A DNA stretch of 57,274 nucleotides from Phyllobates terribilis (GCF_046119375.1 NW_027367524.1:1-57274), one strand, 5' to 3'. Shown: positions 2,008-46,667, counted from the stretch's first letter. The notes: generated by a model from the sequence alone, not told the origin. Translations and numbers: made by a program.

Positions 2008-2047
2008 CTTGTGTACTCTTGATTAGCTTAATTGTGTGAGGAAGAAA

Positions 2048-2062: not shown

Positions 2063-2066
2063 GTAT

Positions 2067-14372: not shown

Positions 14373-15176
14373 TGTTAAGGGTTCCTTAGTTTTGATGTTG
14401 ACAATCACTTCCTAACTCGCTTACCTGAGTGTCATATGCAGTTGCTATTTTAGGGAAGTTTCCTTACTAGGAAACTTTCCATATCAGGGAAGCGACTTTG
14501 AAACCGAAGAGTAATCTTTCCATATTGAAGAATAGGAAACCGGTTAAGAAAGCGATATGCAATTAAAAGGATTACGAAGGATCAAATCTATCAAGACAAA
14601 CGGACTAAGACGCGTTGATATAGAATATCTTTGGAAAAGATATTCGGACGGAAAAGATATATTATATCTAAACAAACGTTAAGTGATGTAAAACAAAGAT
14701 ATTCTTGGAGAAGATACTTAGACGCAAAGAGAGAAGATCTAAGTGTTGTCCGGCTAAAAGGCTAACAAGATAGAGTATCGATACATATCTTGGTGCGTAG
14801 CTATTTAGTATAAATAGATGAAGTCATTTCTATGTATGTGCGTGTGAAACAGAGAGAAGAAAAGATAGGCTAATAGTTTAAGAGATTTATACACTTGTAA
14901 GGGTTGAGTTTGTGTACGAGATAGAGAGAAGAGTGACTTAGATTAGTCCGAGTTCTCTATTTTGTAACGAACAAGAGATCCAATAAAAAGAGTGTGTGGG
15001 TTTCAAATCCTTCTAGTGAAGAACTAGAAGGTAGTGGTTTTACTCAATACTATTTGGTGTTGAGGTTTCCACTATAAATACCGTGTTAAGCTTTTACATA
15101 AATACGTTTCCGCTGAAGCAGATTTTGGGAAGTGACACTCGCTTCCTTGAGTCGGTTACGTCACAACGATCCAACA
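14373..15176 (+). repeat. 5' LTR of SIRE element
   Basis: TGTTAAGGG...CCAACA, followed by PBS TGGTATCAGAGC at 15179-15190; direct repeat of 35021-35820. Confidence 0.95.
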
Positions 15177-15220
15177 ATTGGTATCAGAGCCTGGTGCTAA
15201 GTTGTGACCGAATTGAAAGA

Positions 15221-18200
15221 ATGGCCTCAATCACGTCAATCAATGATTCCTTCTGGAAGCCTCATGCTCTCAAAAATGGAGAATATGACTGGTGGGTAGA
15301 ACAATTCGAATCCCACGTATGTTCACTTCACGGCCAGTTATGGAAAGTTGTCGAATTTGGAGATGAGAAGATTTGGGTCAACCCAGCAACCAAACAAGAA
15401 GAAAAGGAAAGAAAAGACTACTCCGTTGCAGACTACAAGACTTTGGAACTCAACATGAGAGAAAAGAAAGTGTTATACATGGCTCTTAGTCCATCAGATC
15501 TGAGGAAGGTTCTCAGCTGCAAAACGGCGCACGAAATTTGGGAAGCACTGCAGCGAATGTACGAAGGCAATGATGATGTGAAGAAAAACAGGATTCTGGC
15601 TGTTCAAAAAGATTATGACAACGTGGCACAACAAAAGGGAGAATCGCTAGAAGACTTTAACTCCAGATTCCAGAGCTACGTCGGGCAACTAGAATTTCTT
15701 GGAGAAATCCTTCCCGATTGGAAAATCACGCATCAATTTCTACAGGCTTTAAACTCCAAATGGGACTCGATAGCTCTCGCTCTACAAGCGCAGAATGATA
15801 TCAAGTCAATCACACTGGAAGACTTAGTGGCACGTCTTCAAAGCAACGCCGGAGTCCAACTAAGAAAGAACGCTCGACGTGAAAGCGAGAAGAGCCAAAA
15901 CATAGCCCTTAAGATAGAGAAGGCTTTTGATCTAGCTCAGATGGAAGGAGAAGTGGAAGACGAAGATGAGGACATTGCCCTAATCACTAGAGCATTCAAA
16001 AAGGTATGGAAAGGGAACAAAGACTTTCAACGGCCATCGGAGGGAAGCAGCAAAGACCTCAAGGAAGTAATATGTTATCACTGCCAAAAGAAGGGACACT
16101 TTGCAAGAAATTGCTTCAAGAAGAAGGCAGGAGAACCTCCTGTACAAGCTGGAAAAGCTGCAATGGTGGCAACATGGGGAGACTCGGACTCTGACGAAGA
16201 CGCTTCCCTTGCTTCCAAAGATCTTTGCTTAATGGCAACCGCCGACACTTCGGATGATGAGGTAACTGAGTCTACTGTCGTTTCTAAACTAAGAGAAAAA
16301 ACTAAAGAGCATTTGATAGGCATTATTAGAAAACTTGGAAATGAAATTGCTAATTTAAGTGAATCTCTTGAGGAGAAGAGAGAAACTATTTCAAATCTGC
16401 TAGATGACAATAGTGGTTGGGCAGAAAAGGTAAAGAACTTAGAAAAATCTACCTTCATAACCTCAGAAGAATGCAAAGTGTGTCTTATATTAGAAAAGAA
16501 AATTGCTTCTCTAGATAAGACCATAATAATCTGAAAGACGATAGGGAAGCCACTAGGAAAGTGATAGAAGAACTAAAAAAGGATGAAAAAGAAAAGAAAG
16601 AAACATGGAGACTTGATCACACTTTAGAACAATTAAAAAAGGACTTCTCTAAAAGATTTTCTTCAAAAGATGGGATAGGATACGTCAAAGAGATGGTAGG
16701 CAAAGGTAAGGGAAGCGACTCAAACGAAGCTAACACTTCAAATCCAAAGAATCAGTGTGGTAGCTCCAGTATTGGATGCAATCACTGTAATTCTAAGGAC
16801 AAACGAGGGCTTACCTTACCTAAACCGAGCAACTGGTTTGATTGTCAAAAGGCCTTTGAAATTTGGACTAAGCATTCTACGAACAAACAACCAACTCATA
16901 TAGATTTTGAGGCAAGAAAAAATAATAAAACCATTTGGCCTGGACAGAGTAGATATGTTAATTTAAAATGCCATAGAATCTGTTGGCATTGCGGCAAAGA
17001 TGGTCACTATAAACAGAAATGCTATTCAAGGATTAAAATGTTGCAAAGAATTCACGAGGTCCCAAATGAAAATAAAGTTAGTCCTAATGGTGAGTCAAGA
17101 ATTAACAAACCTATATAAATGATCAAACATGTCTCTCCTAAACCCAGTAAGCCTAAGCTTATCTGGGTTTGTAAGAACTAACATGTCTTATACAAGGAAA
17201 AGTGAGGAAGAGTTCCTGGTACATAGATAGTGCATGCTCAGGTCATATGACGGGAAATAGGAACTGGTTCAACTCACTAAAAGAAGAATTCGGAAGCTCA
17301 ATCACGTTTGGAAATGAGCGCAAAGGGGAGGTAATTGGCACATGACAAGTAGGTATCTCAGAATATGTCACGGTGGAGAAAGTGAATCTGGTAAGCAACT
17401 TGAAATTTGATCTCTTAAGTGTCGCCCAACTCTGTCTTGGAGGGAAAAACCAGGTCACATTCACCATCAAGGACTGCATTGTCAAGGATGTGGAAACTGG
17501 GAAGGTAATATTAAAAGGACTATGTGACGGGAAAGTGTACTGAGTCGATCCTTCCTTCATCCCGGAAAGGGAAGTGTGTCTTGCTTCCCTGAAGGAAGAC
17601 TCCAATCTCTGGCACAGAAGGTTTGGACACGCAAGTCTCCGACTTCTTTCAAAACTTCATTCAAAAGGGCTAGTGGAAGGTCTACCTAGAGTTGAGGAGC
17701 AAAACGATCAGGTATGTAGTGCATGTGCAAGAGGTAAACAATCAAGGATATCCTTCAAATCCAAAACAGAGGTAAGTACTCTCAAACCTCTTGATCTAAT
17801 TCATATGGATCTATGTGGACCCATGCGCACCTTGAGCCGTGGTGGAAACAAGTATGTGTTTGTTATTGTTGATGACTTTTCTAGGTACACATGGACCATC
17901 TTTCTTTCCTCAAAAGAAGACGTCTTCTCGGAATTCGTGGTGTGGAAGAAGAAAACAGAACTCAAACTAGAAAGTAAACTGAAATCAATCCGCACTGATC
18001 ATGGAACTGAATTCGAGAACTCCTCCTTTCTCTCACTATGCAGGGAATGTGGAATTGATCACAATTTCTCGGCACCTAGAACTCCACAACATAACGGTGT
18101 AGTCGAACGTAAGAATAGAACGTTGGCAGGGATGACAAGAACACTTTTAATCGCCAGTGGAGTCCCCAGAAATTTCTGGGCTGAAGCTCTACATGCCTCG

Positions 18201-20471
18201 TGTTACATCCTAAACAGAGCCTTTTTAAGGCCTATGCTTGAAAAGACACCCTACGAGCTGCTCAAAGGAAGGAAACCAAATGTAAGTCACTTACGTGTGT
18301 TTGGGTGCAGGTGCTTTGCTCTAATAAACGGAAGGGAAAACTTGGGAAAGTTCGACGCTTGGAGTGATCCAGGCATCTTTGTAGGTTACTCCTCACATAG
18401 TTCAGCATACAAAATCTTCAATCAACGAACAAGGAAAGTAGAGGAAAACGTTCATGTCAGATTCGACGAACACAAAATGGCGGGAACTGAGATCGTCGAC
18501 ATCAATGCACCCCCACTATCCGCTGATGAAGACTTACAAATACCAGAATCTTCCGAAGAAACCATAGGTGAAGAGGGTATTGCTGGTGTTCCTCTAGCAG
18601 AAAACTCAAACTCACAGAATGAGTCCATGCCTCAAGAGAATCAAATGGAGAATGAGGTATCAACAAATATCACAAGTCATCTAGAGGACCACGGAACAAC
18701 TTCATTAGCTCCTCGAATTCGCGTACCCCCGACTCATCTCAGAGACTATGAATGTCCAACCATACGTACCCATCATACAAGCAATCAACCACGCAATCAA
18801 ACAAATCCACAAGTAGTCAACCACGTAGTGGACCAAGGAGGTGAAGAGGTAGTCGACCAAGTAAGTGACCAGGCAACCGACCAGGCTGGAGAACATGTAA
18901 ACAACTCTATCCCTAATTCCTATGCGTTTACTGCCTTTGTTTCACTTGCAGAACCAAAAACCATAAGTGAAGCACTCAAAGATCCAGATTGGATAAAAGC
19001 AATGCAAGAGGAACTTCATCAATTTGAGCGAAACAAAGTTTGGAGACTCGTCCCTAGGCTTGAAAACAGAACTATAATAGGTACGAAATGGGTATTCAGA
19101 AATAAACTCGATGACAAGGGACATGTCACAAGAAACAAGGCAAGGCTTGTCGTTAAAGGGTACAATCAACAGGAGGGAATCGATATGATGAAACTTTTGC
19201 TCCCGTAGCCAGGTTAGAAGCTATCAGACTTTTAATTGCATATTCTGCTCATTATGGATTTGTACTGAAGCAAATGGACGTGAAAACAGCCTTTCTAAAT
19301 GGTGTGCTAGAAGAAGAGGTGTACGTAAGTCAAACACCAGGGTTTGAGGACCACTCTCATCCAAACCACGTCTTCATGTTAGACAAGGCACTATATGGTC
19401 TCAAACAAGCACCTCGTGCTTGGTATGAAAGACTATCACAGTTTCTTCTCTCCCATGGATATGTGCGTGGGGAAATAGACAAAAATCTCTTCCTTCTTAA
19501 AGAAGGGAAGCACACCCTGGTCGTTCAAGTCTACGTTGATGACATTATCTTTGGCTCTACAAATGAGGCATTAGTCACCAAGTTCACTAAACTTATGAAA
19601 GTGAATTTGAGATGAGCATGGTAGGAGAATTAAGGTTCTTCTTAGGACTCCAAGTAGTCCAATCCAAGGAAGGGACAAAGGTACATCAACAAAAGTACAT
19701 CAATGAATGCATCAAGAAATTTGGTATGAATGATTCTAAACCCTTCTCGACCCCTATGTCACCAAATAATTCCTTAGGTAAAGATGAAAAAGAAAGGGAT
19801 GTGGATCAAACTTTATATAGAGGAATGATAGGGTCTTTTCTTTATCTAATGGCTAGTAGGCCAGATGTTATGTATAGTGTATGTCTATGTGCTAGATTTC
19901 AGGCTAATCCAAAAGAGACACACGTCAAGGCTGTAAAACGAATCCTTATATATCTCAATGGGTCAAATGATCTATGTCTATGGTATCCAAGGGGAGGCGA
20001 CTTGTCACTAGTTGGATACACTGGCGCTGACTTCGCAGGAGACAAGGTAGATAGAAAATCTACATCAGGAATGGCACAATTCCTTGGACCATGCCTTGTC
20101 TCATGGGGCTCTAAGAAACAAACGTCAGTTGCCATATCCACAGCAGAGGCCGAGTACATAGCTGCAGCCGCATGCTGCTCACAACTATTATGGCTTAAAC
20201 AACAGGAGACTTTGGCATTTTTCTTGATATTGTTCCTATTTTATGTGATAACACTAGTGCTATTAATATCTCTAAAAATCCTGTGCAGCACTCTAGAACA
20301 AAGCATATAGAAATCAGGCATCACTTTCTTCGTGATTGTGTGGAAAAGGGAATAGTCTCAATGAATTTCTGTAGCACAGAGAATCAAATTGCAGACATCT
20401 TCACAAAGACACTTAATAGAGAACCTTTTGAGCGACTTCATATGGAACTTGGTATGACTTCCCTCAATTAA
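15221..20471 (+). pseudogene. SIRE gag-pol, disrupted
   Basis: Gag, ICYHCQKKGHFARNC and ICWHCGKDGHYKQKC knuckles, PR WYIDSACSGHMTG (about 17217), integrase [41 protein letters not shown], RNase H with GYTGAD in place of GYxDAD. Several stops and frameshifts. Confidence 0.93.
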
Positions 20472-23400
20472 ATCTTATTCCTATATGCCTCTCTCGATGA
20501 TTGGATGAAATCATGCTTGACTTGTTGTTTGTGTGTTGCGTAATTTATGACTTGAAAAATTTGCATGTCGAAATCATACCTATTTGTCTTCCATGCACTG
20601 CACTCTTAGTCTCTTTCCTAGTCGCATACTTCATGTTTTTGGTATTTTGGATTTGCAAATCTCAACGGCCTTTCTTTCAAGCCCAAAAGATTCCTCCCGA
20701 TGATTTTTTAACCCAACATTATAAGCCCAAATGACGGAGGAAATCTACAGTGTCCCAAAGCCTTGTGTAGCATGAGAAATCCTATGAGCCCCTCTTTCGT
20801 ATATTTACTGGATTTATCATGTTACACGTAGTTAAACACTATCATCATATATATATATATATATTTTTTGTGTAATGGTCTCCTTGAGAAACCACCTTTG
20901 GTACGTATCCCCATTCATTACACACCTTCACTATCAGCATGTTTTTAAGGAAGTAAGCGACGAGGTAATCGAGTTAGCCGTCTTCTCGCACTAAACGGAC
21001 ACGTCAGACAACAAAGAAAATAAAGGGGTCAGAATGGAAAAAACGTGTACCCGTGTGAACACTCCACTGATAACTTCTGAGTATGATTAGACAGCTGAAA
21101 AGACCGCGCCACAACTTCCCATACCCATTTGAATTTACTTCTACAGGTTCATCTCTCCCTCCTTCACTTTACCGATTCATTTTCTCCCCTCTCCTTCAAA
21201 CACTCCCTTGCTTCTCTGTGTTCCTTCATCCTCATCCATGGATGAAAAACTCATCTCCTCCACCGATACCACTGAATCCCTCATGGCCAAACTTCTGGCC
21301 ATGGGACTAGACCTCTCGAAGCTCTCTACCCCACCCTTCTCTGATTCTGATCATAACGACCGCCAGAACCCTAACCACGATCCTCAAGAATCCACTTTAC
21401 CCCCTCCGATCCAGATCATCTAGCAAGCAAGAACCTTATCCCTGACCCTCAAGAATCCATACCCTGTCTCGCACTCGTTGTCTACGACCCTCCACCTTCT
21501 TGCTCGGAAAAACCCTCCGCTTCACCCGTCAAAGCTCCATCCTCACCCGCGTCTCCACAAACTACGTCTGTCAAATCTTCATCTCCACCACCAGCTCCAA
21601 AATCTCCGGTTAACAACGACCCTGCCTCCTCTCCTCCACCTCAAACCCCAACATCACCAATCGTTTCCTCTCCCATCACCATGCTTGCTACAACGAGATC
21701 CAAAGCCGCCAAAACCCTAACCAGCAAGAAACGCATAAAGATGAGTGGCCCTCCTCCTTCAAAGCGAGGGATTCTCGGCAAGAATGTCACAATCGTCAGC
21801 TCCAGTGATGACAAAGACTCCCCCAGGTCAAAACGCGTCAAAATTGAGGATCCCGTTGCCGCTCCTACCAAGCGCCAAACCCGTGCTTTTGCCAATAATC
21901 GACCTCAATCTCCTCCGATCAAGGTTCTTCGAACCACTGTCAAGGTCAAAGACTCTCTTCCTGCTGCACGCGACATGCAAGCTCGGACTATCATCAAGGA
22001 AATGGCGTTCAACACCGATTTTCTTGCCGTCAACTCTCTCAGTTCAGTTCAGGACCTCTTCGAATTCCAACAACGGGGATCCTTGTTCTCTCCACAGGTA
22101 TCCATAAATGCCAACCTTGTCCGAACTTTTTACTCCTCATTTCATCTGGTTGAAAGTGATATTGGACTGTGCTGCTACTACATGATCAATAAGCGGAAGT
22201 ACACCATTAGCAGTAGGGAATTAGGACTCATGCTGAATGTTCCTCATGATGGGGACGACAGTTATGTCAAGGGAGCATGGCCCGTGGGGTTTCCGGTCGA
22301 GTATGTGCGCTCTGTCTGCGGTGATCCCACAGTGGTCTTATCTGGTGAAATCTCGACTCAGCATATGCCTCTCGATTCTCGTGTTCTTCATCTTCTTGTG
22401 ATGTCCAATGTTATCCCTTGTGAACAGAAGAAGAATGTGTTGATCATTCAGGATGTGGTTATCCTCGACAAACTCATGCGCAAAGAGAAAATAAGTCTTC
22501 CCCGAATCATCCTCAGCATATGGCGCACATTGTCACTAGCAAGACTCACGCCCTACCTTTTCCCTCCATTGTTCGTCATATTCTACAGTATCATGAGGTC
22601 TACACTAGAGATGGAATTTTCTGAACCGGAACCGGCCTCGGTTCCATGGAACCGTGGGGGTCCCGGTCCCGGTTCCCCATTTCCCCGAACCGGGAACCGG
22701 CGGTTCCGGTTCCCAACCGCCGGTTCCGTTCAATTAATTAACAACATGTATTTTTTAAATTAAATTGAGAATATTTTGTTGAATTAAATAAAATTATTTA
22801 AGATATTTAACTTTGAATTTAAACTTATAAATTAATTTATTTAACTTTGTATTTAAACTTATATTAACTTTATAAAGTTATGAAGTTATAAGTTGTAAGT
22901 TTTATATATTCTTTATGAAGTTATACTTATGATGTTATAAAGTTGTAAGCTTATATATTTAACTTTATATATTTAAGTTTGTTTTGAATTAATCTAATAA
23001 TATATTTAACTTTAAAAACATAAAAACTTTAGTCTTTAGTTACTTGATTTATTTATATTGTTTATATATTCTTTTCAAAATATAGTGTGAATTATAATAA
23101 AAAGTTTACTTAAGTTTATTTTGAAGTTAAAAAATTAATGTTTGAATTTATATTTAACTTTATAAAAACTTTGAATTTAACGTGAATTCAACTTTGTATT
23201 TTATTTTACTTTGAATTAAAGTTTTACTTTGAATTAAAGTTTTAAAACTTCCTTGGAACATATCGGGTCTGACCAACCTCACCGCATGCGTGTTGTGCGA
23301 ATTCAGATTGGAAAGAAACCCATTTTATTCCGGAGTACGATTACGAGTGAGTTTCCAAGTTGTACTTCTCATTGTAAGTTTGTCGATTAAATGTAAAAAA

Positions 23401-23525
23401 AAAATTGTGGGGGCTTGCACTTAATATTTACTTACTTATTAAGTTGCCTACGTATCCTCTTGGATCCATTAGAGGAATCAAAGCCCAAGTAGTTCTCTTA
23501 CCTCTTAACATTTGGACTCGCTTAC

Positions 23526-25606
23526 CTACGTGTTGGTGCCGGATGAGGAGGCGTTCCCACCATCGGAAGAATCGGTGCGCACTGTTGTTGCATCTCCAGC
23601 CCATTTGTCGGTGGAGTAATCGATGTTGTCGATGTTAGCTTGATTTCTTGCAATGGCCTTCTTCCAATCACAAATGCACACTTGCGCCTCTAATGACTCT
23701 GGAGCTAATCGACTTCTCTTCTCGTTGAGGATGTGGCCTCCTTGACTAAAGGCTTGTTCTACCGCCACCGTTGAAGGGGGGGACCGCAAGTACTTGACTC
23801 GCTATCTTGTACATTGTCGGGAAAGCGCTCCTATGCTTGACCCACCAACCCAAAACATCTAGATCTTGAATGTTAGCAAATTGAAATTCCGTGTTATAAT
23901 ATAAGTCGATTTCCGCACTTGAAACCATAGTCCTTGGACTTTTTCAAAAAAATTAGATTTAAAGTTACGCAAAGATGATGTACCACTAGAACTAGAAGGA
24001 GGAGTAGGAGTAGGAGGTAGTTCCGATGATGATGAGCCCTCCACGAAATGAGAGAATAAAGACTCAACATTTTCTCTAGTCTTAGAGACTATATCGGATA
24101 CGTACCCTTCGAGATCTAATATTCCACCAACACATAAATAATAGTTCTCTAACAAAGACCTTAAACCTCCTAATTTAAACCTAGGATCCATAACACAAGC
24201 AACAAGAAAAATATCGGGGATCTCACTATAATAAATTAATCATTTGCGTTTCATTTCCGAGACGGCATAAAGTAGTGTGGGGATTTCGGCCGCCTCGGTC
24301 AACGCAACCATTACATTATTAGCTTCTATAACAAACTCATTAGCACTTGGTCTATATACATTACTAAATGTAAGAGTAGCATCGTTAAAACATTTTAAAA
24401 ATATTGCAATTTTGGAACATGAATATCAATCGTCATCGTTGAAATAATCCGACTCCGGAATGTATTGACTCGCAAAAGACGTTAAAACGTCCTTGTAGTT
24501 AACACATTCACAAAGTAATTTGTAAGTGGAGTTCCACCGAGTACCAACGTCTTTTGAAAAACGTTTGGGTGGAACTCCATTGTCTTCACAAAATTTCATC
24601 CAATCCTTTGTAACCTTACTACGGTTCCAAATATATCGGACTATGTTTTTATGGGTTCAATATGGTTTTTCATAGCCGATAAACCATCTTGAACACACAA
24701 ATTTAAAACATGACAAGCACATCGAACATGAAAAAATTTACCGCCAAAAAGAGGTTGACAAGCAAGTGACAAATCTCTCAAAGATGCGGTGTTGGCCGAT
24801 GCATTGTAAAATCCAATAGAAAAAACTCTATTGAGAAGCCGGTATTCCTCTAAAACTAGACGAATCATTTTAGCAATGTTTACGGCGGTGTGAGACTCGT
24901 TAAATTGTCTAAACGCTAAAACACGCTTTTGCATGAAAAAGTTCGAATCAAGAAAATGACATGTAATACCCATGTAAGAATTAGTTTGTTGATGATCACT
25001 CCATATATCACTACATATAGAAACATTTAAATCATTGTTTGCAAAATAACTAACTAATTCGGCTTTACGATTCCTATAACACCTAATAATGTTTTTCTTG
25101 TTTGTTTTTCTTCCTATCTTTTTATATGAAGGTTGTACTACGCTCATAATTTCATTAAATCCTAGATTCTCACTAAATTGAGATGCTAAATGATCAACAC
25201 ATGTTGCTTCGGCAATTGTGTTACTAACTAATTCATGATTATAAACGTAAAGAGGGTTGGATGAAGATGCAAACCCTTGCGAAATTTGTGCTTGCCCTCG
25301 TAGCATTCCGAGCTTATCGACGTGCTTTGTCTTCATGTGTTTAGTCAGTGTCCCGTATCCACTGCCAAGTTTTCATACATATCGCACCGGACAATGCCTG
25401 CAAAAAACATCAATTTTACCGTTAGTAGCCGTCGTTCCTTTAGTAAAATGTTAAGTAAAAATTTCGGATTTAAGTATTGTTTGTGAGGTTGTAGGTGTTG
25501 ATGATGGTGTACCATCATCATCACCAACAATATCCTCACTCGGTGCAATGTTATCAATATGTTCACTCTCTTGAGTGCTAATATCGTTAACATTTGTGGT
25601 TGCCAT
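23526..25606 (-). pseudogene. hAT transposase, inactivated
   Basis: BED finger (CRHC...HMKTKH) with in-frame TAA and TGA, SICSDIW, CACHVLNL, TRWNSTY, DPRFKL and dimerization motif VAVEQAFSQGG. Second catalytic D appears as Y (GFYNAS). Further stops and frameshifts. Confidence 0.92.
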
Positions 25607-25849
25607 AATCAAGTAATGATATATATAAAACAATATCAAGAACAATATAAGAACAAATCAACAAATGCAAGAAATTGGAAAAGAGATGATGGAGATTAGA
25701 GATTTCTTGAATGCTTGAGAGTAGGTTATAGAGAGAGAAGAGAGATGGTTTGATTGCGTGATTTGGAGTGGAGTGTTAATGGGTATTTATAGGATTTAAT
25801 TATTATTTTTTTATAAAAAAGCATTTAAAATTGGGCAAATTGGACATTT

Positions 25850-26045
25850 GGCTAGAAAACTAGCCATTGAACCGTCGGTTCGTCCTAACGGCTAGTTTTC
25901 TAGCCGTTGGGCGTGTTTTGCATGCGTTGGAACCGGCGGTTCCGCCGGTTCAACGGCTAGTTTTTTTAAAAACTAGTCGTTGGGCGTGGAACCGCCGGTT
26001 CGAACCGGCAGTTCCAACGGCTAGTTTTTTAAAAACTAGCCGTTT
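25850..26045. repeat. Array of palindromic units (AACGGCTAG-T/A tract-CTAGCCGTT and GAACCGGCGGTTC) between divergent TATA boxes
   Basis: Three hairpin-like copies, e.g. aacggctagttttttaaaaactagccgtt, interleaved with aaccgg/ccggtt motifs. TATAAATA on the minus strand at 25784-25791 and on the plus strand at 26130-26137. Confidence 0.8.
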
Positions 26046-26222
26046 TAAGCTTCGACAAATAAAAAAAATTAAATACCTTTATAGCCGTTTGGGAGTGTAA
26101 AAAAAAATTAAAAACATATTTTTTGCCTCTATAAATACTAATTCACCCATTCTCATTCTTCACATCAACTACATTCTTCATATTCCATTACAAGAATCAC
26201 ATTCTCTCTAATTTTTTTGCAA

Positions 26223-26567
26223 ATGGATAACCGTGCCCCTTGGCCCCCGTCGGAGGAGATTTTAGAGCATCGAGCTGGGATTACCCGTCGTCTTTTTGAA
26301 GTGCATTACACTAGGGGTAACCCAAACGAGTGTCGAAGAGCGGGATATGTAATTATTTCTTGTAATCGTTGTCCGTGCAAGTATGAATGGAAGCTCGGTG
26401 GCGGATTCGGAACATTAATAAAGCATTTACGGGCCCGCCACATAGACGAGTGGACTTCAACAGTACTAGGAGTACCGCCACCGCCGCCGGTCGAGCCCGA
26501 GGCCGAGGGCGAGGTCAGCGAGGAGGACGAGGAGGAGGAGGACGAGGGGGCGCCGCCAACTGAATAA
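26223..26567 (+). CDS. Stand-alone BED zinc-finger protein with Pro/acidic tail (114 aa), second ORF of the hAT element
   Basis: ATG...TAA uninterrupted; CNRC..YEWKLGGGFGTLIKHLRARH; upstream TATAAATA and a CT-rich leader; AATAAA about 75 bp downstream. Confidence 0.75.
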   Translation: MDNRAPWPPSEEILEHRAGITRRLFEVHYTRGNPNECRRAGYVIISCNRCPCKYEWKLGGGFGTLIKHLRARHIDEWTSTVLGVPPPPPVEPEAEGEVSEEDEEEEDEGAPPTE

Positions 26568-27574
26568 TTGCATATTTGCATTTTAATATATTTGCATTTC
26601 AATATTTGCATTTCAATATTATTGTACTTGTTTTTAAATTCAATAAATTATATTTGCAGTTCGCATTCTAATATTATTTTTTCCATATTATTATTGTTGT
26701 TTTGGATTGTATGAAATTATTAATTATTATTCAAAACATGATTTTAAAACAAGTACACAATAATATTATTATTAATTTTTATTCAAAAGAATCAAAACAA
26801 GTACACAACAATTTAAGAATCAAAACATTAAATTAGTTTTAAAAATGAAAATACAATTTTTTAAAAAAAAATGGAGGCGGGGCCGGTTTGGAACCGGATG
26901 TACCGCCTCAGAACCGGCAGTTCCCGGAACCGGGGGACCGGGGGTTTACCACTGTACCCGGTTCCAGTTCCGGTTCCTGCTTCTCAGGAACCGGCCCACC
27001 TCTAGTCTACACCGAGCGTCCTGGCGATATCATCTTAGCTAAGCCCTTGACTGATGAGACCCTGCGCAAAATGAAGTTCATTAAGTCTGATGCAGGATGG
27101 ATGAGAGCTCCACAGCAGAGTCCAAAACAAGGGTCCTCGACACAGCTTCGCTTGCGTACTCTCCTGACTAGCCTACTCGAAGCCGCTGATCGACTAAGTG
27201 CTGAGATTGATTCAATGGCGTCTCCGGGTGTTGAGTCGGCAGAGAACTCCGATGCTGAGTAACTTGCTATCCTGCTTTCACGCTGATCCCTCAAACACCA
27301 CTCCCAGCTGTCAATCCCTATCCTCTTTTGTTTTTGCTTCTATGCTTTTGTGATTTGCTTGTCTGATTTACCTGAAACTTGGTTGTTGTGATGGATAATT
27401 TCTGAGGGTGTGCTTTCATGAGCAAGCCATCCTGGTATGTTCTTATGCCATGTTCTTTTTCTTGTCATATTTCTGCTTTATCCTTCTCATATCTTGCCTT
27501 TTTGATGATGCCAAAAGGGGGAAGGTTTCTGGGGATACTATTTTGAGAGGGAAGTCGCCTACTAGGTAGACTTG

Positions 27575-30500
27575 TGATAGGAGCTTATTATATGATGTAA
27601 CTAGCGACTATTAGCTTAGGATTAGTGGTGTTTAGGTGCTTATTGAGTGGTATTCCCGAAATCTAGTATGATTGTTCACTTATAGATTTGTGGGATGCTC
27701 TTAAGCGTTATTATGTCGTATTGCATTATGGAGATCCTATTTGTACTCACTTTTAGTGCATTTGGGACGGAGCTAGAGAGAAGACGACCACACCTACACC
27801 CATGGAGAGCTGAGAGGGGAAGCCGAGCTGCCTCAGAAGCTAGCAGAAGACGAAGACCAGTCCGAGAGAAGGTTTCAAGACGAAGACGAGCCAATTGAAG
27901 AAGTCTCGGTCGAAAGTTTCCCTCGAAGAAGATGTAGCGGTCGTGACTATAAAGTAGCGATCGCGACTTTGGCTCGACATGGATGTAGTGATCGCGACCC
28001 AGAAGTAGCGACCGCGACTTGAGACATTCCTGAGAGATTAGTGAAAAGTAGCGACCGCGACCCTGAAGGTAGCGACCGCGACCCTGAAGGTAGCGACCGC
28101 GACTTTTGGCGGACCCGGCCCAAATTGCAGATTTAAGCCCGGGATTTATCAGATTTTATTAGTTTTCCCATTTTATTCATTTATTCATAGTTATTTTATT
28201 CCTTAGAGGTTGGACCCTATATATACCTCTAGTTTTTAGGTTAGATTAGATCTTTTTGCCACTTTACAATTAGTTCTTAGAAATTCAGCCACCAAGAGGA
28301 AAGCTGCCACCTTTCTACCATCTTCTACCTTCAATCCTGGTTAGTTTATCCATCATCATGTATAGCTTTCTCTTGGCTATGCCTGGCTAAGTTCCTACGA
28401 GTTCACTCTTAGGTTGAGGCCCTTATTCTAGGAATTGTTTGTGAGAATTCTATGTTTATGTTCTAATATAATAATTTCAGCATTGTTTTATTTTCTCTTA
28501 TGCTTATTGTCATTGATTGGTATTGATTTTATCTAGGTTCGAAACTAGGTAGATTTATATTCATTCATACTGCTAGGCTTGATAATTCGATTTGAAAAGT
28601 CTTGTCTTTTAGGTAGCAAACAGAATTAGCATAGACTATTTGCGAGTGCTTCTTTTGTAGAGATTATAAACCTGTGTCGAGTATCGGTGATTTGCCAATG
28701 GTATTGCATAGGCTTACATATCTTTGATCTTTATGCTGTTGAGTAGTTGAACCTTAGGATTTCTTTGGTTATTGCATACAACAAGGGTTTCTAGGACTAT
28801 TTGGACTAGTTGCTATTTACGAACAAAGAGTAGGACAACTAGATTATTTATTTAAAAGAACATAACTTTATTAGAATTCGATGATCAACTTTCCATAAGA
28901 ATAATGTGCTGAGACTGAAAGAGTGAGCTTTTTATTGTTATAAGTTTACAAAAAATCCAACAATTTTCGGTTACTATTGCTTTCACAAATTTACAAACCA
29001 AAACCCGCTTTGTTACTTTTGGTAACACGCTTGAAAGAAACTATCGTTGTGGCTCCCTGTGGAATCGACTCCGACTTACCTCTTAACTAGTGGATAGTAG
29101 TTGGATTTATCTTTGACAGGACCAACGACCGGTAAAACGCCTGTCAAATTTTGGCGCCGTTGCCGGGGAGCCAACTGTCATAGTTTGTTTCTTTGTGTGT
29201 TATCTTGGTGTGGACCTATCTTATGGTCCACACACGAGCCACTAATTCAAATTTATTTGATTTTATTCCAGAGATAGAGCGGGTGCATCTACGCAATCTA
29301 CGACAATCTCTACAGAATTTAGTAATCGAATCAATGGCGGCCAGAACGTTGAGAGAGCTTACAGACCCAGATCTGACGCAACAATGTCTAGGAGTGACGC
29401 CACCTGCCCTGAATAATGGCGTCACGTTCGAACTTAAGACCGGCTTCATCAACTTATTGCTGAAGTTTCATAGATCAGCTGGAGAAGACCCAATTATGCA
29501 TTTAAGCGAGTTCCACGACATCTGCAGCTGCAGCAAACCAAATAATGTCACCGACGAGCAAATCAAGATGAGAGCCTTCGGTCTTACGCTAAAAGACAGC
29601 GCACGCCAGTGGTATTACTTGCTGCCCACCGGAAGTATCGACACATGGGAGAAGCTTCACAAAGCCTTCCTCAACAAATATTTCCCGTCCAAGAAGGCGG
29701 TTGCACTAAAAAGGGCGATAGCAATGGTGGAACAGCAGGACGCTGAGACGTTATATGACTACGTGGAGAGGTTCGTAAGACTGTGTGCGAGCTGCCCATT
29801 TCATGGCTTCGAGGAGAAGGACCTGGTAACCCACCTTTATAATGGGTTGTTAGATAATGAGAGACGATTGGTGGATGTTGCGTGCAACGGGAGCGTGCTG
29901 AATTTGACTCCCGTCGAAGCCAGAGCGCGATTGAACGAGATTGTCGAGGGCACGAGGAGCTTCGGAAGGACGTATGCACGAAAGGGAGCCAATGTTGTGA
30001 GCTCCGGAAAGCCGGAATGGAAGAGCGAGATAGCTGAGCTCAAGAGTATGATAAAGAGCCTCGCCGTTGGTAATGCCAAGCCTGCGAGAGTTTGCGGTAT
30101 TTGTGCAGACGAGACCCATCCCACCGATATGTGTCCACAGCTCCAGGACCAGACTATCGCAGAGGTGCACGTTGTAGGAGGATTCGGACCTCCCCGTCCT
30201 CGCTTCGAGAACAACAATAATAATTACAACCAGCGAGAGGGAAACTACAATCCGAGGGGGAATGACCATCCCGAATTTAGGTGGGGAGATTCATCCGGGG
30301 CGCAGAACAGGCCGCTCCAATTCAACAATCAATACCGTGCGCCATACCAACCGAGGAATGAGGATCCATCGATGAGGGAGATGATCGAGTCCTTGTCCAA
30401 GCATTTCACAGCCCACGTGCAAACAACGGAGTCAAGTATAAGGAGCTTAGAGAAGCAAGCGGCGCAAATAGCGGAGGCGGTGAACAATCTTCAACAGCAG

Positions 30501-33500
30501 GGATCGGGAAAGTTACCATCTCAGGCCGTGGCAGCACCGCGAGAAAATGTAAGTGTCATCTCGACTGTAGGAGAGCTAAGGCCCGATGAAAAGGAGACGG
30601 AGGACGAATCTGTAGAAAAGTCACGACCGCTACACGAGAGTCACAACCGCAACATTCACCCCGAGAGAAACTCGCGATCGCTACACCAGATTCTCGACCG
30701 CAACATTGGCTTCGAGGAGAACTCGCGACCGCGACTCAAAAGTAGCGATCGAGAAGGCGGTGATCCAAAAATTTCCGAAAAGAGTAGCGACCGCGACATT
30801 GATTCTCGACCGCGACTTTCTGACAATGACGTTCGAGAGGACGAAGCGATCCTCAAGAGGTTCGGGAAGTGCCAGGGAAACAAATATCTACTCCAACTCG
30901 CCAAAAAGGTACCCCGCTTTGCTACGCGTTTGAAAGAGATGTGCACTAAGAAAGCAACCAAGAAGCTGCAAGGGAGGCAGCATGTCCAGGTAAGCGGAAG
31001 GGTCTCCGCAGCCATTCAACCGACAATGGCTACTAAGCGTGCGGACCCGGGAATGGTAACCATCCCGTGTACCATAGGTACAACTAAAATTGATAAAGCC
31101 ATGTTGGATTTAGGAGCCTCGATAAATGTCCTACCTTACTCAATTTATGAATTATTAAATCTAAGACGCATGAGTAAAACAGGAATAGTTTTGCAATTAG
31201 CCGATGGATCGACGATCTACCCGAGAGGATTGGTCGAAGATGTGTTGTTTCAAGTAGAAAACCTTGTATTTCCTGCAGATTTCTATGTTCTGGATGATAA
31301 ATATGAGAAGCATACCACACATGTCCTGCTAGGTAGACCGTTTATGCGGACGTCTAAGACTAAGATAGATTTAGATACCGGGGCGCTGACGCTCGGATTT
31401 AATGGGGAAGTTGTTAAATTCAATATATTTGGTACTAAGACACAACCCCTAGATGAAAGCTCTGTGTTTTGCATAAATGATGTCATAAAAATTTCCGAGC
31501 TTGGAACTAATGCTGTTTTGGGAAGTGGCCCCACCTCGATAACCAAACAGGAAAAGAAACCTGCTAAAACTGTTGCACAGGTACCCAAGAAAGCGAAAGG
31601 AAAGGCAAAAGGTCGAGCCAAGAACAAGAGTGGGGAGAAGAAAACGGAGAAGAAACCCAAACAAGTGTGGGTAGTGAAAGAGGATAATGTCTAAGGTTCA
31701 AACCTTTCCATCCATGGTTTAAGAAATTACTGCTAGACGATGCGATCCGTAAAGGATTGAAAAACGTTGAATGAGTTGTTGTATATCGTGCCGCGACATT
31801 AAATAAGGCGCTAACCGGGAGGCAACCCGGAGGATTTTTACTAACCTTAATCCCATTTGTTTGTTTTGTTTGTGTCATTAGAGAGTCTAAGGAGTCAGCA
31901 GGGAGAAGCTATTTGTGGAGTAAAACCGACTAAACCCCCAAAATCACTCAAGTCACGATCGCGACCCGATAAGTCTCGACCGCGACTTTACCCCCAAGGA
32001 GAAGTAGCGGTTGCGACCCGATAAGTCTCGACCGAGACGACGATCCCCGACTTTGCGAAAAAAAATTCCGAAAAATGTCTCGACCGCGACTCGGTTGTCT
32101 CGACCGTGATCGGAGGCGTCGACGCGGCAAAGTGATCGCGGTATTTCCCCCTTCCCTATGTTATGAGGTCCTCTTTTGCTGCATTGAGGACAATGCGTTG
32201 TTCAAGTATGGGGAGGGAATTACCGTACCGAGGAGGAGGTTTATGTGTTTTGTTTTCTATCTTTCTTACTTTTTTTCTGCTGAACTGTTTGGAGTCGTAT
32301 TTCGATCGAGTCTGTACGAACTTATTTACTTGTTTTGAACTCTTGCATCGTTTTATATTTAAAAAAACCAAAGGAGAGTAAAAAAGGAATAGATCAAAAA
32401 GGGGGGCTCCTACAAAAAAAAACGAAAAAGAGACGAAAAAAATCGAAAAAGTCACGAAAAATAAAAGAATAAAAACCAGGCAAGCAAAAAAAGGATTAAA
32501 AAGGAAAAGGTTGGTGCCTGAAAAAAATAAAGAAAAGAAAAGAATAGTTCCTCCCACTTAGATTTTGGTGAAAACCCGAAAGGGCGCCGGAATTACATTG
32601 TTTTGTGATTGATTTATTAATTGCATATCTAAATGGCACAGGAGACATAAGAAGGGAGTAAAAGGATGTCTCGGGTTTCTAGGATTCACCAAGGAGGTAT
32701 AAGGAGTTAGTTTAGCCTTTTATATCTCTTATTTATGAGCTTATTGTATCCACGCTTTGCATATCTACCATTCCATTAGTTTATTAGGATGCTTTATATA
32801 TATATTATCGGCGGTTGAGTTAGATTCTAGGATTAGTTCACTATTTCTTGGAGTTTGATGCATACTGTTGTGGTTGTATGATGCAGAATTTTAAATTAGG
32901 ATTGGTGGTTGTGATTTGTGGATTTATCATATTATCTAGTGGTTTAGGACATTACTCGAAGAGGAGGAATAAGAAGTGTATAAGCGAGTGGGAGACTCGA
33001 TTTTATTCTTATTTATGTCATATCTATGTACCCTTACCCTTAGAGGAGAATAGGATTCCACTTGTGCTTAAAAGCACATCACTTTGTTCGATTATTATTA
33101 TTGCTATGGAGTGGTGTCATATGAAGGTGGAGAGATAAGGAGGGTTTTTGGGTAGGATATCTCGGAGACATAAGGAGATAGATCGGAGTATGTTGCTTAC
33201 ATACACTTTGGAGTTTGGAGTATAGTCGCTAGCAGATTTTCTCTACATTTACTGTAGACCTTTGTGCTTTTTAGGAGGAGTGAGTTTTATTTTGCTTACT
33301 CGAGGACGAGCAAGGTTTAAGTGTGGGGAGGTTTGATAGGAGCTTATTATATGGTGTAACTAGCGACTATTAGCTTAGGATTAGTGGTGTTTAGGTGCTT
33401 ATTGAGTGGTATTCCCGGAATCTAGTATGATTGTTCACTTATAGATTTGCGGGATGCTCTTAAGCGTTATTATGTCGTATTATATTATGGAGATCCTATT

Positions 33501-41130: not shown

Positions 41131-44100
41131 TTTTATTTTTTTTTGAACAAGTAATACAAAGGTCAATCTTCTAGAGAAGATGACCTAAATCATCAAAGCG
41201 GATGATCTTTACAAATTCCCAAATTCGAGAGGGACACTGTTGGTGTAATGAATCTAGCCTATCACACATAATGATGGAATTATAATTCTTGACAACTTCC
41301 GAGAGGAATGGTTGTTTCCATCTGAATTTCGCTAGAAAATCTTCAGCTTGGTTGCCGGAACGTTTGATGTGATTGAACTTTATAGCCTGGATTGTTGAAC
41401 TTAACTTGTGAGTTTCTTGTATGATAGAGTTGATTTCCCAGGGCACTTTTTTGTACGCTTCAGACTGTTGATAACTGTGAGATTGTCACCTTCGACGATG
41501 ACAAAACGGAGCCCCAAGCCCACAACAGCTTTAACAGCAGCAAGCGCGGCTAAAGCTTCGGCTTGGAGAGCATTAAAGGTATAAATACCTTTAGTGTCAG
41601 CATGTATAATATCCCCAGAATGGTTTCTAATAATATAAGCGATATATCATTACTGGTCTTTATAAGAGGCATCGAAGTTGATTTTAACCCAATTACGAGG
41701 AGGTTTTTTCCAACAATGATAGAGTTAAAGAGATTGACTCTGTTGTTGTCGTTGATTCTAAAAATAATATTGTTTCTGGTTTGCCACACATTCCACCATA
41801 TGAAAAAGGCCAGAGGAAGATTGGTGTTACAGTTTCTAAAGTTATGTAGAGAGGTTAAAAAATCTCCAGAATCATTTTCTTTCCAACCAAAAGAATAAGT
41901 CTAATGTAAAGGAGCAGTTGAAGAAAATATGATTAGTAGTCTCATTCGCATTAAGACAAACCCCAAGCCCACAGATTCTCTGAAATCACAGTTTTAGTAA
42001 ACGATGCTGAAAAGGGTAGTGACACTGATCAGAGACTCGGTGAAAGAATCTATTTAGCCTTTCGGTAATAGGAAGGCAGTCAGCACATGCTTTCCAAAGA
42101 AATTTTTTAATCTTCGGAGGAAGATCAAGATTCCAATAATTAAAGGGAAGTGAAACATTTCCAAAACTACGAGAGGCTAAGAAAGCCGATTGCGAAGAGA
42201 ATTCCCCAGAATTAGATGGGGCCCAAATAATTATATCTTTTGTAGGAAAACGGGGGATATAAACAGACTTGATTTGATCCACCATATAATAAGGAAAAAT
42301 CGAATTAAGCAGATCCGTATTCCAATGTCTATCCGGGGTCAAGAAAAAATCAAGAGTAGCGTTTCTGTCATTAGAACCTAAGAATGAGGATAGGTCAAGA
42401 TTGGGATGCCAGTTATCAATCCAAAATTTAATTGAGGAACCGGTACCCACCTGCCATTTTATAAGAGATTTAAATTTATCACGAATAGAGAGAAGTCGGT
42501 TGAACTGCCAGGAATAAGAAGGCTTTTTATCAACATTAAGGATATCATTGTTGACGAGATATTTTTCATAAATTATTGAAGACCACAAAGAGTTCGGGTT
42601 TTTCAAAATATTCCAAAGAAGTTTCATCTGCAAAGTTTCATTATTTTCCTGGGCAAGACGCAGGCCAACGCCGCCTTCGTCTTTAGGTTTACAAATTTTA
42701 TCCCAACTGATCAGAGGGTGGAAATTCGCAGATTGTTTGTTCCAGAAGAATTTCTTGTGAATGCCGTCAATGTCAAGACAAAGACCTTTTGGAAGAAGAA
42801 AGCACTGCATCAAATAATTGAGTTTTGACGAGAGGTTTGTCTGAATTAATTGTATTCTGCCTGCTTGTGATAGGGTGTTAGCTTTCCATTTAGCTAATTG
42901 TTTTTTAAGATTGGTAATGTATTCTTCAAAAAGATTTTTACAAACTCTACCATTAACTATTGGGATCCCTAGGTATTTTTCTAACTTAGTGGTGATAGGA
43001 ATATTTAGATGAGATGCTAAGTTAATTTGAGAGTTACGCGGGAGACCTTTAGATAATTGGATAGAGCTTTTGTTAAAATTAATAGTTAGTCCACTTTGTC
43101 TAGAGAATTTTTGAAGGAAATTTTTAATGAATTCTAAATTTTGCATATTTGCTTCCGCAAAAATAATAGTATCATCGGCAAAACTAAGAAAAGGAATGGT
43201 ACTACCGTTAGGACAAGCCTGATTCCAATGTGACGAGCTAGTAGAGCAGCTGCAATTGTCATTGATCTAGCAAGAAATTCCATGGCCAAGATAAAGAGGA
43301 AAGGGGCAATCGGGTCTCCTTGTCGTAAACCACATGTCGGAGAAAATTCAGTACCAGGTTGGTTATTAACTAGAACGGAGATTCGAGGAGTAGTAATACA
43401 TTGTTTAATGAGTGCAATCCATTTATCTGAGAAGCCAAATTTGTTTAGAACTTTGAATAAGAAATGTCAATCTACTTTATCATAGGCTTTTTCCATATCT
43501 ATTTTGATAGTCATAAGGTTATTCTTCTTCTTATTGTGCTTGTGAAATGTGTGAAAGATTTCATGAGCAGCTAGAATGTTATCATGGATAATTCGGCCTT
43601 CCACAAAACCACTTTGGAAGGGAGAAATAATATTCGGAAGTAACGTTTTTAGTCTATTAGCAAGAATTTTTGAAATTATTTTATAAGAAGAGTTACAAAG
43701 GCCAATAGGTCTATAATCATTAATAGTAATATGAGAGTCCTTCTTAGGGATTAGAGCTATAAATGAATAATTCCAATGTGCTAGAAGATGTCCTGAATGA
43801 AAAAAGGCTTTAATAGCTTCAAAAAACGATCGATGGGTATATTTCCAGAATTTTTTATAGAAGTCAATAGGAAAACCATCAGGACCCGGAGTTTTATCTG
43901 AGGGTTGATCAAAAACTGCAGTTTTGACTTCATTTAAGGTTGGGGTTTTTGTGAGGAAAGAATTTTCTTCATCAGAAATTATAGTTGGGATAATGGATAA
44001 TTCGTCAGTGGAAATGTATGAGGTTGGGCTGGAAGTTAAACGTTTGGCTAACTCAATAGTGATAGCTTCAGAGATGTCTTCCTGAGAATAAAGAGTTCTA

Positions 44101-46667
44101 TTATCTGTAGTCTGAAAAGAGTGAATTGCTTGACGATAAGTTCTAATTTTTGCTATAGAGTGAAAGTATTTGTTATTTTGATCATTAAAAGCATGGTGTT
44201 TTAATTTAGATCTTCTTTTCCAATAATTGTTGTGAAACTTAAGAAGGGACGAATGTCGCAAAGTATGATTGTTGATTTTATTCTTAAGGTAATTATTCGA
44301 GGGATCTTGGAGGAATTGAAGATATAATTCTTGAAGTTTCTTTTCCGAGGATACGAATTGCGTAAAATTATGATTGGTATTTCTTTTAGCCCAGCATTTA
44401 GCATAGGATTTTAAGAGCCGCAACTTTTGAGAGAATTTAAACATATATGATCCTTTAATGGAGTACTTCCAAACTTTGGAGACCAGGGCTTCAAAAGATT
44501 TATAATCTGACCAATCTTGTTCATATCTAAAAGGGAGCTTAATAGTTGTGGATTTGTTACCCAACGAAAAGGTGATTAGACGGTGATCCGATGAGGAAAA
44601 CGGATGATGCTTGACCATATTATCATTAGAAAAGGAGGTAAGAGAAGCGTGAATAAGAACACGATCCAAACGTTCATATATATTGTGGTCAAGTTGTCTA
44701 GTTTTTTCTCCAGGTGAAGGGAAAACCTTCAAATTTAGTGTCAGTTAATCCAAGATCAGTAATAAGGTCATTTAAACGATTAAAGTTTCTCGAAAAAGGA
44801 TCAAAACCTCCTAATTTATCCAGAGGGGAGAGAATGTCATTGAAATCCCCCATTAACAAAGAAGGAAGGTGAAGATCCATAATTTCGTTTTGACAAAATG
44901 CCAGTAATCATTTTTTAGGTGATCTTTCGAGGGAGCATAGAGGAAAACCATAATAAAGTTAAGATTATTAAGATTGCAATGCAGGAAAATCGTATTGTTA
45001 ATCGATTTATGTTTAGTGATAGTACGAGTGGTGCAAGAGTTTTTAATAAGTACCCATAACCACCTTTGGTTCCTTCGGCAGGGCACGAAAAGCATTTATC
45101 AAAACCTAATCTCTTAATTTCATCAGTATTTGGTTTATCCATAGTTTTGGTTTCTGAAAGGCTAAGTATGTCTAGTCTATTAAGCTTTTGAATATATTTG
45201 ATTTCGAGAGCGAAAGTAGGTCGATTAATACCTCTAACATTCCAATAACCTATATTCATAAAATAATAATTGTGAAGCCTACTACAGACTTGTTAGTGTT
45301 ACACAACTTAATTTCGGGCCCAATGTCTGATATCAAAAAGAAAGCCCACCAAGGCCCTTTTGTAAGAAGAGCACAATGGACATTCAAAAATCGCGAAGTA
45401 GAGATATTTTCATACTTGAATGTCAAAATTAAATTGAGTTTTTTTAAGGTCTGAGTTTCAATAACCCCATCGTCCAAAATCAGCCAAGAAGCCCATAAAG
45501 GCCCTTCAGAAATCGGAAAATGGGGGATATTAAAATAATTTGAACTAAAATTGAATCCTGCAAAATAAATTTTGAAGCATACATTCATCTGACGGGTTCT
45601 ATAATGACAGTTAATAGTCGAGGTATATAAAAGATTGTCAAGATCAATTCTGCCAATAATTTGCAAAGAGCAAAATGAAAACACCTGCAAATTCCAAGGC
45701 GCTTCATAAGTTGTATATTTACGTTTCAAATTTTCATGGCTTTCGCCTAGTAACAATTGGCTTTCGCCTACAAACATATGGGTTTCCCCAGAAAAAGAAA
45801 GACAATAACAAAGATGAACCGACAACTGATCATAAAGCAAGAGCAAGTAGTTGGAATTAGAATGTCTAATACAATACTAATGACAACTGACAGAGCTTAT
45901 ACTAACTTCAAGGAAGTATGGAGAAGAACAAAAACAAAGGAGAGACCAACTTACCTGCGGGGTGAAACCACACTGAAGAGGAAGGCATGATAAATACTGG
46001 CTATGGGGAACGGGAGCAGGCGAGTGTCGAAAGGATCGGAACAAAAATAGAGGTTGCGCCTGAGCACCACAGAGCCCGAGCGAGGCTGGATCCGTCAGAG
46101 AAAGGGCCACCCAGAAGCAAAGGGGAACGCCACCAAGATCCGGAGAAGACCACCAGTCGCCAACGACGACGACAAGGGAGCAAACCCCGAGGGAAAACAT
46201 CCGACTGCAGCCAGGCGAAAGCGCAGACGACCACCACTGAAAACTAATCGGAGAAAGCGAGGAGGCTGGGTCAGCAAGGGAGAGGAGAGGAGGAGCTGCG
46301 CCAGGCGGAGGCCAGCTGGGACGGCACCGGAAAACAGGAGAAACGGCCAGAGAAACCGCGAGGGACGCCGTCATTGACGGAGCCGGAGAAGAGGGGGAAG
46401 GGCGCTGGAGCTGCCATCTAAAGGAGGAAACAGGGAAGGAGAACTCAATCGGACAGCAGACCGCCGGAAAATCAAGGAAGAAGGGAAGATTTGTGTGGCG
46501 ACTGATATGGGTGGTTCTGATATTAGGGTTTGGAAGGGAGAATTTCAAAGGGAGAGTTTCCATCTTCCCCTCAATGACTTAAAAGTTAAATACTTCTACA
46601 ATTGGCAAATCCGTATTTCTATAGTGACTAAATGGGTGCAATCTTGGCGACTGTGTTGACTACTATT
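41131..46667 (-). mobile_element. L1-clade LINE with ORF2 (EN-RT-RNase H) and no recognisable ORF1
   Basis: Poly(A) remnant at about 41131-41144; 17-bp TSD ACCGCTTTTCCTATTTT (41114-41130 and 46668-46684) at a TTTT/AA site. Confidence 0.92.
41171..45259 (-). pseudogene. LINE ORF2, frameshifted
   Basis: MNIGYWNVRG and LSETK (APE endonuclease), GDFN, TPGPDGF, YRPIGLCN, DMEKAYDKV, GLRQGDPIAPFLF, FADD, a zf-RVT-like region, and RNase H (WVKINFDAS; HIKRSGNQ). Multiple stops and frameshifts. Confidence 0.92.

Follow-up and report, generated by a model that had tools for sequence, protein, structure and literature searches.

Results

Organization of the hAT element

The window, i.e., the whole stretch of 57,274 nucleotides that was analysed, is transposon-rich plant DNA. 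At 22606-27004 it carries a hAT element, and the TSD-bounded position given for it in the earlier note is confirmed by the sequence, which shows an 8-bp duplication (TSD) next to short TIRs. The element holds two divergent reading frames: a broken transposase gene and ORF2, a small frame on the other strand at a distance of 617 bp from the ATG of the transposase. The features of the element are as follows (window positions; strand given where there is one):

22598-22605: left TSD GTCTACAC, with the identical 8-mer at 27005-27012 (sequence and pattern search)
22606-22614, plus strand: left TIR TAGAGATGG, on the 3' side of the transposase (sequence and pattern search)
22615-22740: left subterminal array, AACCGG/GGTTCC-type (repeat families D1, D9, I8)
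23526-25606, minus strand: hAT transposase pseudogene, ATG at 25606-25604, with a Dimer_Tnp_hAT domain
25784-25792, minus strand: CTATAAATA box of the transposase (motif search)
25850-26089: shared control region between the divergent TATA boxes (D1, D10, D15, I2, I4, I11, I12, I14 and motif searches)
26129-26137, plus strand: ORF2 CTATAAATA box, which precedes the ATG by 94 nt
26223-26567 (stop codon included), plus strand: ORF2, 114 aa, single exon, BED-only, intact frame
26361-26441, plus strand: core of the BED zinc finger, C47 and C50 to H68 and H73
26475-26564, plus strand: low-complexity tail, PPPPP followed by an acidic run (sequence)
26572-26678, plus strand: 3' UTR of ORF2, four ATATTTGCATTTC-type repeats (D7, D8), AATAAA at 26642-26647
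26870-26995: right subterminal array, AACCGG/GGTTCC-type (repeat and pattern search)
26996-27004, plus strand: right TIR CCACCTCTA; the terminus of the related contig L001, ...AACCGGCCACCTCTA, is alike
27005-27012: right TSD GTCTACAC (sequence and pattern search)

The TIRs TAGAGATGG and CCACCTCTA match at 8 of 9 positions, with one mismatch. A pattern search found 11 copies of AACCG/CGGTT clustered at 22624-22721 in the left array, and repeats of the AACCGG/GGTTCC type recur inside the element at 25866-26018 (family D1).

The element interrupts an ORF of the Transposase_32 type ("putative plant transposon protein"; Pfam E 8e-11, under the curated cut-off), whose parts flank it at 21681-22605 and from 27013 onwards. 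Thus, the hAT element is nested in another transposon. The Pfam-type domain search of the window also detected a copia gag with integrase/RT (15083-19208), a gypsy-type gag-protease ORF of 833 aa (29193-31694), a LINE RT with the plant zf-RVT domain (41986-44732) and exons of a ubiquitin-activating enzyme E1 gene (50806-52930).

Transposase gene and abundance of the family

The transposase gene of the window copy has two in-frame stops within its BED finger (TAA at 25453-25451 and TGA at 25375-25373), and its frame changes near 24645 and further 3'. The BED-type CCHH motif is present. The C-terminal hAT dimerisation domain lies at 23529-23789 (Pfam Dimer_Tnp_hAT, E 1.9e-08), and the middle transposase ORF of 231 aa has many hAT relatives that bear ZBED1_RNase-like domains. 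The BED finger, the RNase-H-like core (via these relatives) and the dimerisation domain place the element in the hAT superfamily, with the gene broken in the window copy.

Contigs of four public runs (X1, X2, X4 and X5) were placed on the element at a likeness of at least 85%. It turned out that the family is very abundant in two organisms, with 2776-5562 contigs per run. The family consensus has K and W at the two transposase stops and one additional T at 24645, all of these in nearly all contigs. The proposal that a transposase stop is a former Trp is borne out by nearly all family contigs from the four runs, which have C at 25373 (TGA -> TGG). Since the family contigs keep K and W and the extra T, the window copy is a decayed member of a large family that was probably active recently. 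The private changes of the window copy amount to roughly 1.5-3%.

Organisms A and B both have multiple copies of the ORF2 region in their DNA. In X1 its summed depth is 486-1695, compared with about 950-4400 over the transposase body. Within the element interior, both X1 and X2 have their lowest summed depth at 26023-26324, around the promoter and 5' end of ORF2. Run X4, from organism C, contains low-copy transposase segments (23398-25245) about 99% identical to the window copy, e.g., with 6 differences in 597 bases. Over ORF2, X4 has a single piece (26378-26640), with an identity of about 90% and 12 gap letters, and it does not cover 26174-26324. This contrast within X4 may mean a very close relative, or separate histories of the element halves. 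In all of the deeper runs, a 46-bp piece of the 3' noncoding part of the hAT (23271-23316) has a summed depth several-fold above the rest of the element, and reads over it continue into other conserved sequence, ...AATAATTGGGTCAAC before it and TGACTTACTTAACCA... behind it. This piece is common to another, more abundant repeat.

ORF2 and its predicted protein

The earlier note described ORF2 as an intact ORF of 114 aa, divergent from the transposase and ending in a poly-Pro stretch followed by an acidic tail; the sequence confirms each of these points. The start context is caaATGG, AATAAA lies 75 nt past the stop, and the ORF2 stop and the right element end are separated by 437 bp of AT-rich sequence. 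We infer transcription of ORF2 from its conserved promoter and polyadenylation signals. Among the public runs, no RNA run was listed as containing ORF2; X1 and X2 plus X4 and X5 (type not given) all behaved as DNA.

ORF2 has the features of a zf-BED domain, namely the CxxC...HxxxH ligands, the usual spacing and the pre-finger aromatics. In an alignment of 14 BED sequences, the ligands C47, C50, H68 and H73 as well as G61 are invariant, and F25, H28 and N48 are nearly so. In the AlphaFold2 model built with the same number of BED sequences, a beta hairpin with strands at residues 42-47 and 53-57 is predicted, as is a helix at 62-72, and the mean pLDDT of 10-residue blocks over residues 21-80 is 81-92. 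The match of ORF2 to zf-BED (PF02892) is under the gathering threshold (13.6 bits vs 20.6, E 0.069), as are those of the transposase BED domains of the same lineage (19.8 and 15.9 bits). Features from the ESM Atlas group ORF2 with small BED proteins. For this very small domain, a Foldseek comparison of the model with the PDB gave no significant match, and a sequence-profile search of the PDB gave nothing convincing.

Three well-supported differences separate the ORF2 of the window copy from the family consensus: H16R, R49H and one synonymous change. The element is dead, and chance may be enough to explain why so short an ORF is still open in this copy.

The shared control region

Because the same CTATAAATA box is found on either strand, ORF2 and the transposase gene are arranged divergently around a control region of 336 bp. 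This region contains three modules about 64 bp apart, and each of them combines a palindrome of the GGAACCGGCGGTTCC type with two inverted AACGGCTAG motifs. The subterminal arrays are of the same repeat family as the palindromes. When one mismatch is tolerated, the 57 kb contain 15 AACGGCTAG-like sites; 8 of these, among them all five exact ones, fall in the control region. As to the idea that the repeats of the element are the partner motif of ORF2, the AACCGG arrays are indeed present, but the motif that accompanies the ORF2 promoter across elements is AACGGCTAG and not AACCGG.

The MSA motif of plants is specific for G2/M and is bound by MYB3R, with the consensus YCYAACGGYYA (PMC5405339). 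Three of the motifs in the control region match this consensus exactly; they are found at 25884-26023, between the two TATA boxes, and there are no further matches in the 57 kb, where 0.19 are expected by chance; none of 100 shuffles gave three. Two matches are also found at 86-119 of L001, upstream of its first ORF2 unit. Expression of the element might be linked to dividing cells through these MSA-like motifs, unless the motif is simply what one of the BED fingers binds.

Relation of ORF2 to the transposase BED finger

ORF2 was proposed to be a paralogue of the BED finger of its own transposase, and a tblastn comparison agrees with this, giving 32% identity over 68 aa (E 1e-10). In the core, 14 of 27 residues are identical, and nucleotide identity in a core of 33 codons is 58%. 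The match extends to the segment before the finger, LFEVHYTRG in ORF2 vs IFT*HFTKG in the transposase. A phmmer search of the full library with ORF2 gave BED proteins only, with E values as low as 1e-13. These were multi-BED host proteins, three small proteins and P0008, a fragment of a transposase (40%). The best relatives are hAT transposase N-termini and small element-borne BED ORFs, in line with the view of ORF2 as an internal duplicate and not a recognisable capture from the host. A word-indexed protein search with ORF2 alone gave no match, and exact-sequence look-ups found neither ORF2 nor P0015 on record.

A profile search with five small BED proteins also brought up P0009-P0014 from Acer. 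They were rejected as ORF2 homologues and taken out of the ORF2 set, because they are N-terminal pieces of ordinary transposases, with transposase sequence continuing behind the finger.

In the BED tree, the branches leading to the ORF2 fingers measure 1.0-4.2 substitutions per site, compared with a median end branch of 0.53. The data reject neither monophyly of ORF2 (p-AU 0.097) nor the grouping of ORF2 with its own transposase (p-AU 0.39), and they fit one old duplication as well as repeated duplication or gene conversion between the fingers. The long ORF2 branches could reflect relaxed constraint instead of an arms race.

Related loci and their distribution

L001 is a 5.1-kb contig from an unrelated assembly. 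It starts with a cluster of AACCGG-type repeats, like window 25866-26018, and it contains a hAT end, ...AACCGGCCACCTCTA, after 20 AACCG/CGGTT repeats. Two small BED ORFs of 82 and 80 aa lie in tandem, point to this terminus and end in a proline run. Each unit has the CTATAAATA box, AACGGCTA motifs upstream of the box, and AATAAA after the stop. L001 thus holds the end of a diverged element whose terminus and AACGGCTAG promoter motifs are as in the hAT of the window. The gene caller chose the opposite strand for L001. The tandem units (L001 130-1800) are a mosaic: the last third of the coding part and the 3' UTR are about 90% identical, and the 5' UTR and finger part about 45-50%. The pattern suggests that gene conversion or unequal crossing-over affected the 3' part, or else that the part for DNA binding underwent diversifying change.

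L002 is a contig of 626 bp with a BED ORF of 115 aa, the same TATA box and a Gln/Glu-rich tail. Directly past its stop, at 465-520, lies a tandem repeat, TATTTCAATATTTTAGTTG, comparable to the ATATTTGCATTTC-type repeats in the 3' UTR of the window ORF2. The tails are short, of low complexity and not conserved across homologues, being Pro-rich in both ORFs of L001 and Gln/Glu-rich in L002.

Three related hATs, L004, L005 from Paulownia and L003 from Acer, have the transposase directly behind the 5' repeats and no divergent BED ORF. Transposase identity to the window is 63% for L004 (in the matched part, about half, of the 231-aa piece) and 55% for the Paulownia element. As ORF2 is absent from these three, it is a gain of one sublineage. 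L124 begins 97 bp before the transposase and hence is without an upstream region. The two-gene layout proposed in the earlier note is not a one-off, with two ORFs in L001 and another in L002, but it does not extend to these three related hATs. The full layout is known only from the window because the L001 and L002 contigs stop short of the transposase gene. A scan of metagenome contigs for the terminus AACCGGCC(N)ACCTCTA gave at least 118 matches, all apparently due to chance; the sole match near AACCG repeats was a bacterial tRNA cluster.

Probable selection on the ORF2 protein

The ORF2 set comprises four sequences on three contigs. Two of them were found via a protein database, and these are intact by construction. 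The first ORF of L001 (L001a) is intact, although it was neither found by protein search nor called as a gene. The four proteins share 25-42% pairwise identity, and their local BLOSUM62 scores are 108-137, whereas 300 codon shuffles of each pair never scored above 52. All four have retained the zinc ligands together with the pre-finger helix. Third codon positions are near random in pairs with the window ORF2 (identity 0.24-0.32). Over all six pairs dN is 0.64-0.96, and for the window pairs the NG86 dS is beyond computation. The CTATAAATA box is kept in four of four genes; apart from this TATA box and the CAAATG start context, the UTRs, including the remaining 5' UTR, cannot be aligned. CAAATG is followed by G in the window and in both units of L001.

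The asymmetry between codon positions was dropped as a selection test, since shuffled controls aligned at the protein level show equal asymmetry. Our argument uses only the protein score set against the near-random third positions and the flanks. The protein has been kept while silent sites and flanks were randomised, which argues, indirectly and from few sequences, for selection on ORF2 at the protein level during most of that time.

Discussion

The hAT elements (Ac/Ds, Tam3, hobo and Hermes) are textbook single-gene DNA transposons. Two-gene DNA transposons are represented by PIF/Harbinger, with a Myb-like ORF1 and a transposase, and by MuDR with mudrA and mudrB. The MuDR genes are transcribed convergently from the ends, and the second protein of Harbinger binds DNA. 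Unlike in these systems, the second gene described here is paralogous to the DNA-binding domain of the transposase itself. The transposition repressors KP of the P element and InsA of IS1 are essentially the N-terminal DNA-binding domain of the transposase; they are products of the transposase gene, formed through internal deletion, through splicing or when frameshifting fails to occur. A product of this type was considered for ORF2 and rejected, since ORF2 is a separate divergent gene on the opposite strand, with its own promoter and a diverged finger. In open-access papers and preprints, we found no hAT with a second gene. Element proteins that consist of a DNA-binding domain only are already known in other superfamilies; hAT elements are not known to have such a layout.

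On balance, it is probable that ORF2 encodes a DNA-binding regulator that acts on the element's own repeats, and that one hAT sublineage has in ORF2 a true second gene, because a related but diverged element shows this layout again. ORF2 would have arisen by copying the N-terminal DNA-binding module of the transposase, i.e., the pre-finger helix and the CCHH BED finger. It would now be a single-exon transcription unit of its own, divergent from the transposase gene and placed between the shared control region and the transposon end. The protein is predicted to fold as a zinc-bound BED finger. The BED domains of Hermes bind the left end of the transposon (PMC10368747); since hAT transposase BED domains bind transposon ends, the BED-only ORF2 protein would be expected to bind DNA as well. 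Candidate sites are the AACGGCTAG pairs and the AACCGG palindromes (GGAACCGG) between the TATA boxes, and perhaps the subterminal arrays. These own-element repeats, in the shared promoter and at the ends, would be the nearest candidates, and binding to them would regulate the element. The ORF2 of the window could at best be a stray trans-acting copy, because its element is dead.

For the direction of this regulation, we tentatively favour an activating or anti-silencing role, by analogy with Spm TnpA and VANDAL VANC. The short tails rich in Pro, acidic residues or Gln, and a finger that evolves several-fold faster than transposase fingers, are reasons for this preference, as are the duplication and divergence of ORF2 in L001 and the great success of the family. 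Spelled out, the idea is that a TnpA/VANC-like factor derived from a duplicated BED domain evolves rapidly, recognises the family repeats and activates or de-silences the shared bidirectional promoter; in this complete form we hold it more loosely still.

The explanation that comes next is a self-limiting inhibitor, in which a free BED finger would occupy the subterminal transposase sites and block assembly of the transpososome, which is how KP and InsA act. ORF2 keeps the DNA-binding module without the catalytic or dimerisation part, and its promoter region holds AACCGG-type repeats of the subterminal family (D1). Since engagement of the transposon end requires several BED domains in Hermes (PMC10368747), a free BED domain is a plausible competitor. 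We nevertheless consider an inhibitor unlikely. The finger is strongly diverged from that of the transposase (the 32% over 68 aa given above), which fits poorly with competition for identical sites, the tails resemble low-complexity segments of the activation type, the family has a very high copy number, and tandem diverged duplicates such as those of L001 are not expected of a simple competitor. A functionless relic seems to us just as unlikely. In this case the 5' end of the transposase gene would have been partly duplicated in inverted orientation, or the element would have fused head-to-head with a deleted sister element; the result would then have been fixed in the structure of the family, the frame being open by chance. 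ORF2 is short, and at about 1.5-3% private changes 114 intact codons are unremarkable; moreover, the AACCGG cluster at 25866-26018 could be an old element end, no RNA run is listed with ORF2, and related hATs manage without it. However, four copies whose third positions and flanks are randomised have kept frames of 80-115 codons, the ligands, the pre-finger helix, the TATA box and the start context, and L001a is intact although neither a protein database nor gene calling led to it. No transposase-like sequence follows ORF2, so a plain truncated copy of the transposase is not what is seen, which also counts against a relic.

Capture of a host BED gene fragment, i.e., Pack-type transduplication, is very improbable. 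Similar host BED fingers do exist, for instance in P0004, which has two fingers and 35% identity. The nearest relatives, however, are small ORFs carried by elements and N-termini of transposases from this hAT group (the transposase of the element itself, and P0008 with 40%), the homology includes the transposase-type pre-finger segment, and the gene has its own conserved promoter instead of exon/intron fragments. It also occupies the same place in the diverged element L001, and the test for a captured fragment was negative.

Coming back to ORF2 as a putative regulator, its closest functional parallels are found in two other groups of plant transposons. Plant Spm elements encode the DNA-binding domain of the transposase separately, sometimes as a gene of its own, and this domain exerts sequence-specific regulation (bioRxiv 10.64898/2026.08.24.746577). 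The likeness to TnpA of Spm/CACTA is that a transposase-derived DNA-binding module is encoded apart from the catalytic transposase in the same element; in some families TnpA is a separate gene with its own start site, and it acts on repeats of its own element (bioRxiv 10.64898/2026.08.24.746577). The superfamilies differ, and TnpA has two HTH motifs where ORF2 has a BED zinc finger. The Spm transposase has lost the domain in a partition, whereas here the transposase keeps its BED domain and ORF2 is an extra copy. VANC of the Arabidopsis VANDAL elements, which are Mutator-like, is an element-encoded sequence-specific anti-silencing protein (PMC5735166, PMC10398659). VANC targets short noncoding motifs of its own family; like ORF2, it is a small, fast-evolving accessory protein with duplicated and diverged paralogues. 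In contrast to ORF2, which is known from sequence, VANC has been demonstrated to cause hypomethylation, and it shows no kinship in sequence or fold to BED. ORF2 has no homology to TnpA (tandem HTH) or to VANC, and the likeness lies in the proposed function.

Host genes domesticated from hAT BED domains include those for CGGBP1-like proteins (PMC8097297) and the ZBED and SLEEPER genes (PMC3499209). Proteins of the CGGBP/ZBED kind are also short, with a hAT-derived BED domain and without catalysis, and the CGGBP-like group binds motifs containing CGG. Unlike the CGGBP, ZBED and SLEEPER genes, which are host loci not enclosed by transposon ends, ORF2 travels with the TSD-bounded, high-copy element that contains it. 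A domesticated host BED gene was rejected for this reason, the region being multi-copy in two organisms.

Small ORFs of this kind are currently missed in annotation. If ORF2 is a regulator, then hATs also separate regulation from catalysis, as Spm does with TnpA and VANDAL with VANC, and hAT would be the third superfamily of plant DNA transposons to have arrived independently at a stand-alone regulator made from the transposase DNA-binding domain. A protein of 114 aa, a control region of about 340 bp and two short motifs would offer a simple test system for transposon self-regulation and de-silencing. With a BED-only gene already inside the transposon, such an element would also represent an intermediate stage on the way to the BED-only transcription factors of the host that are thought to be derived from hATs.
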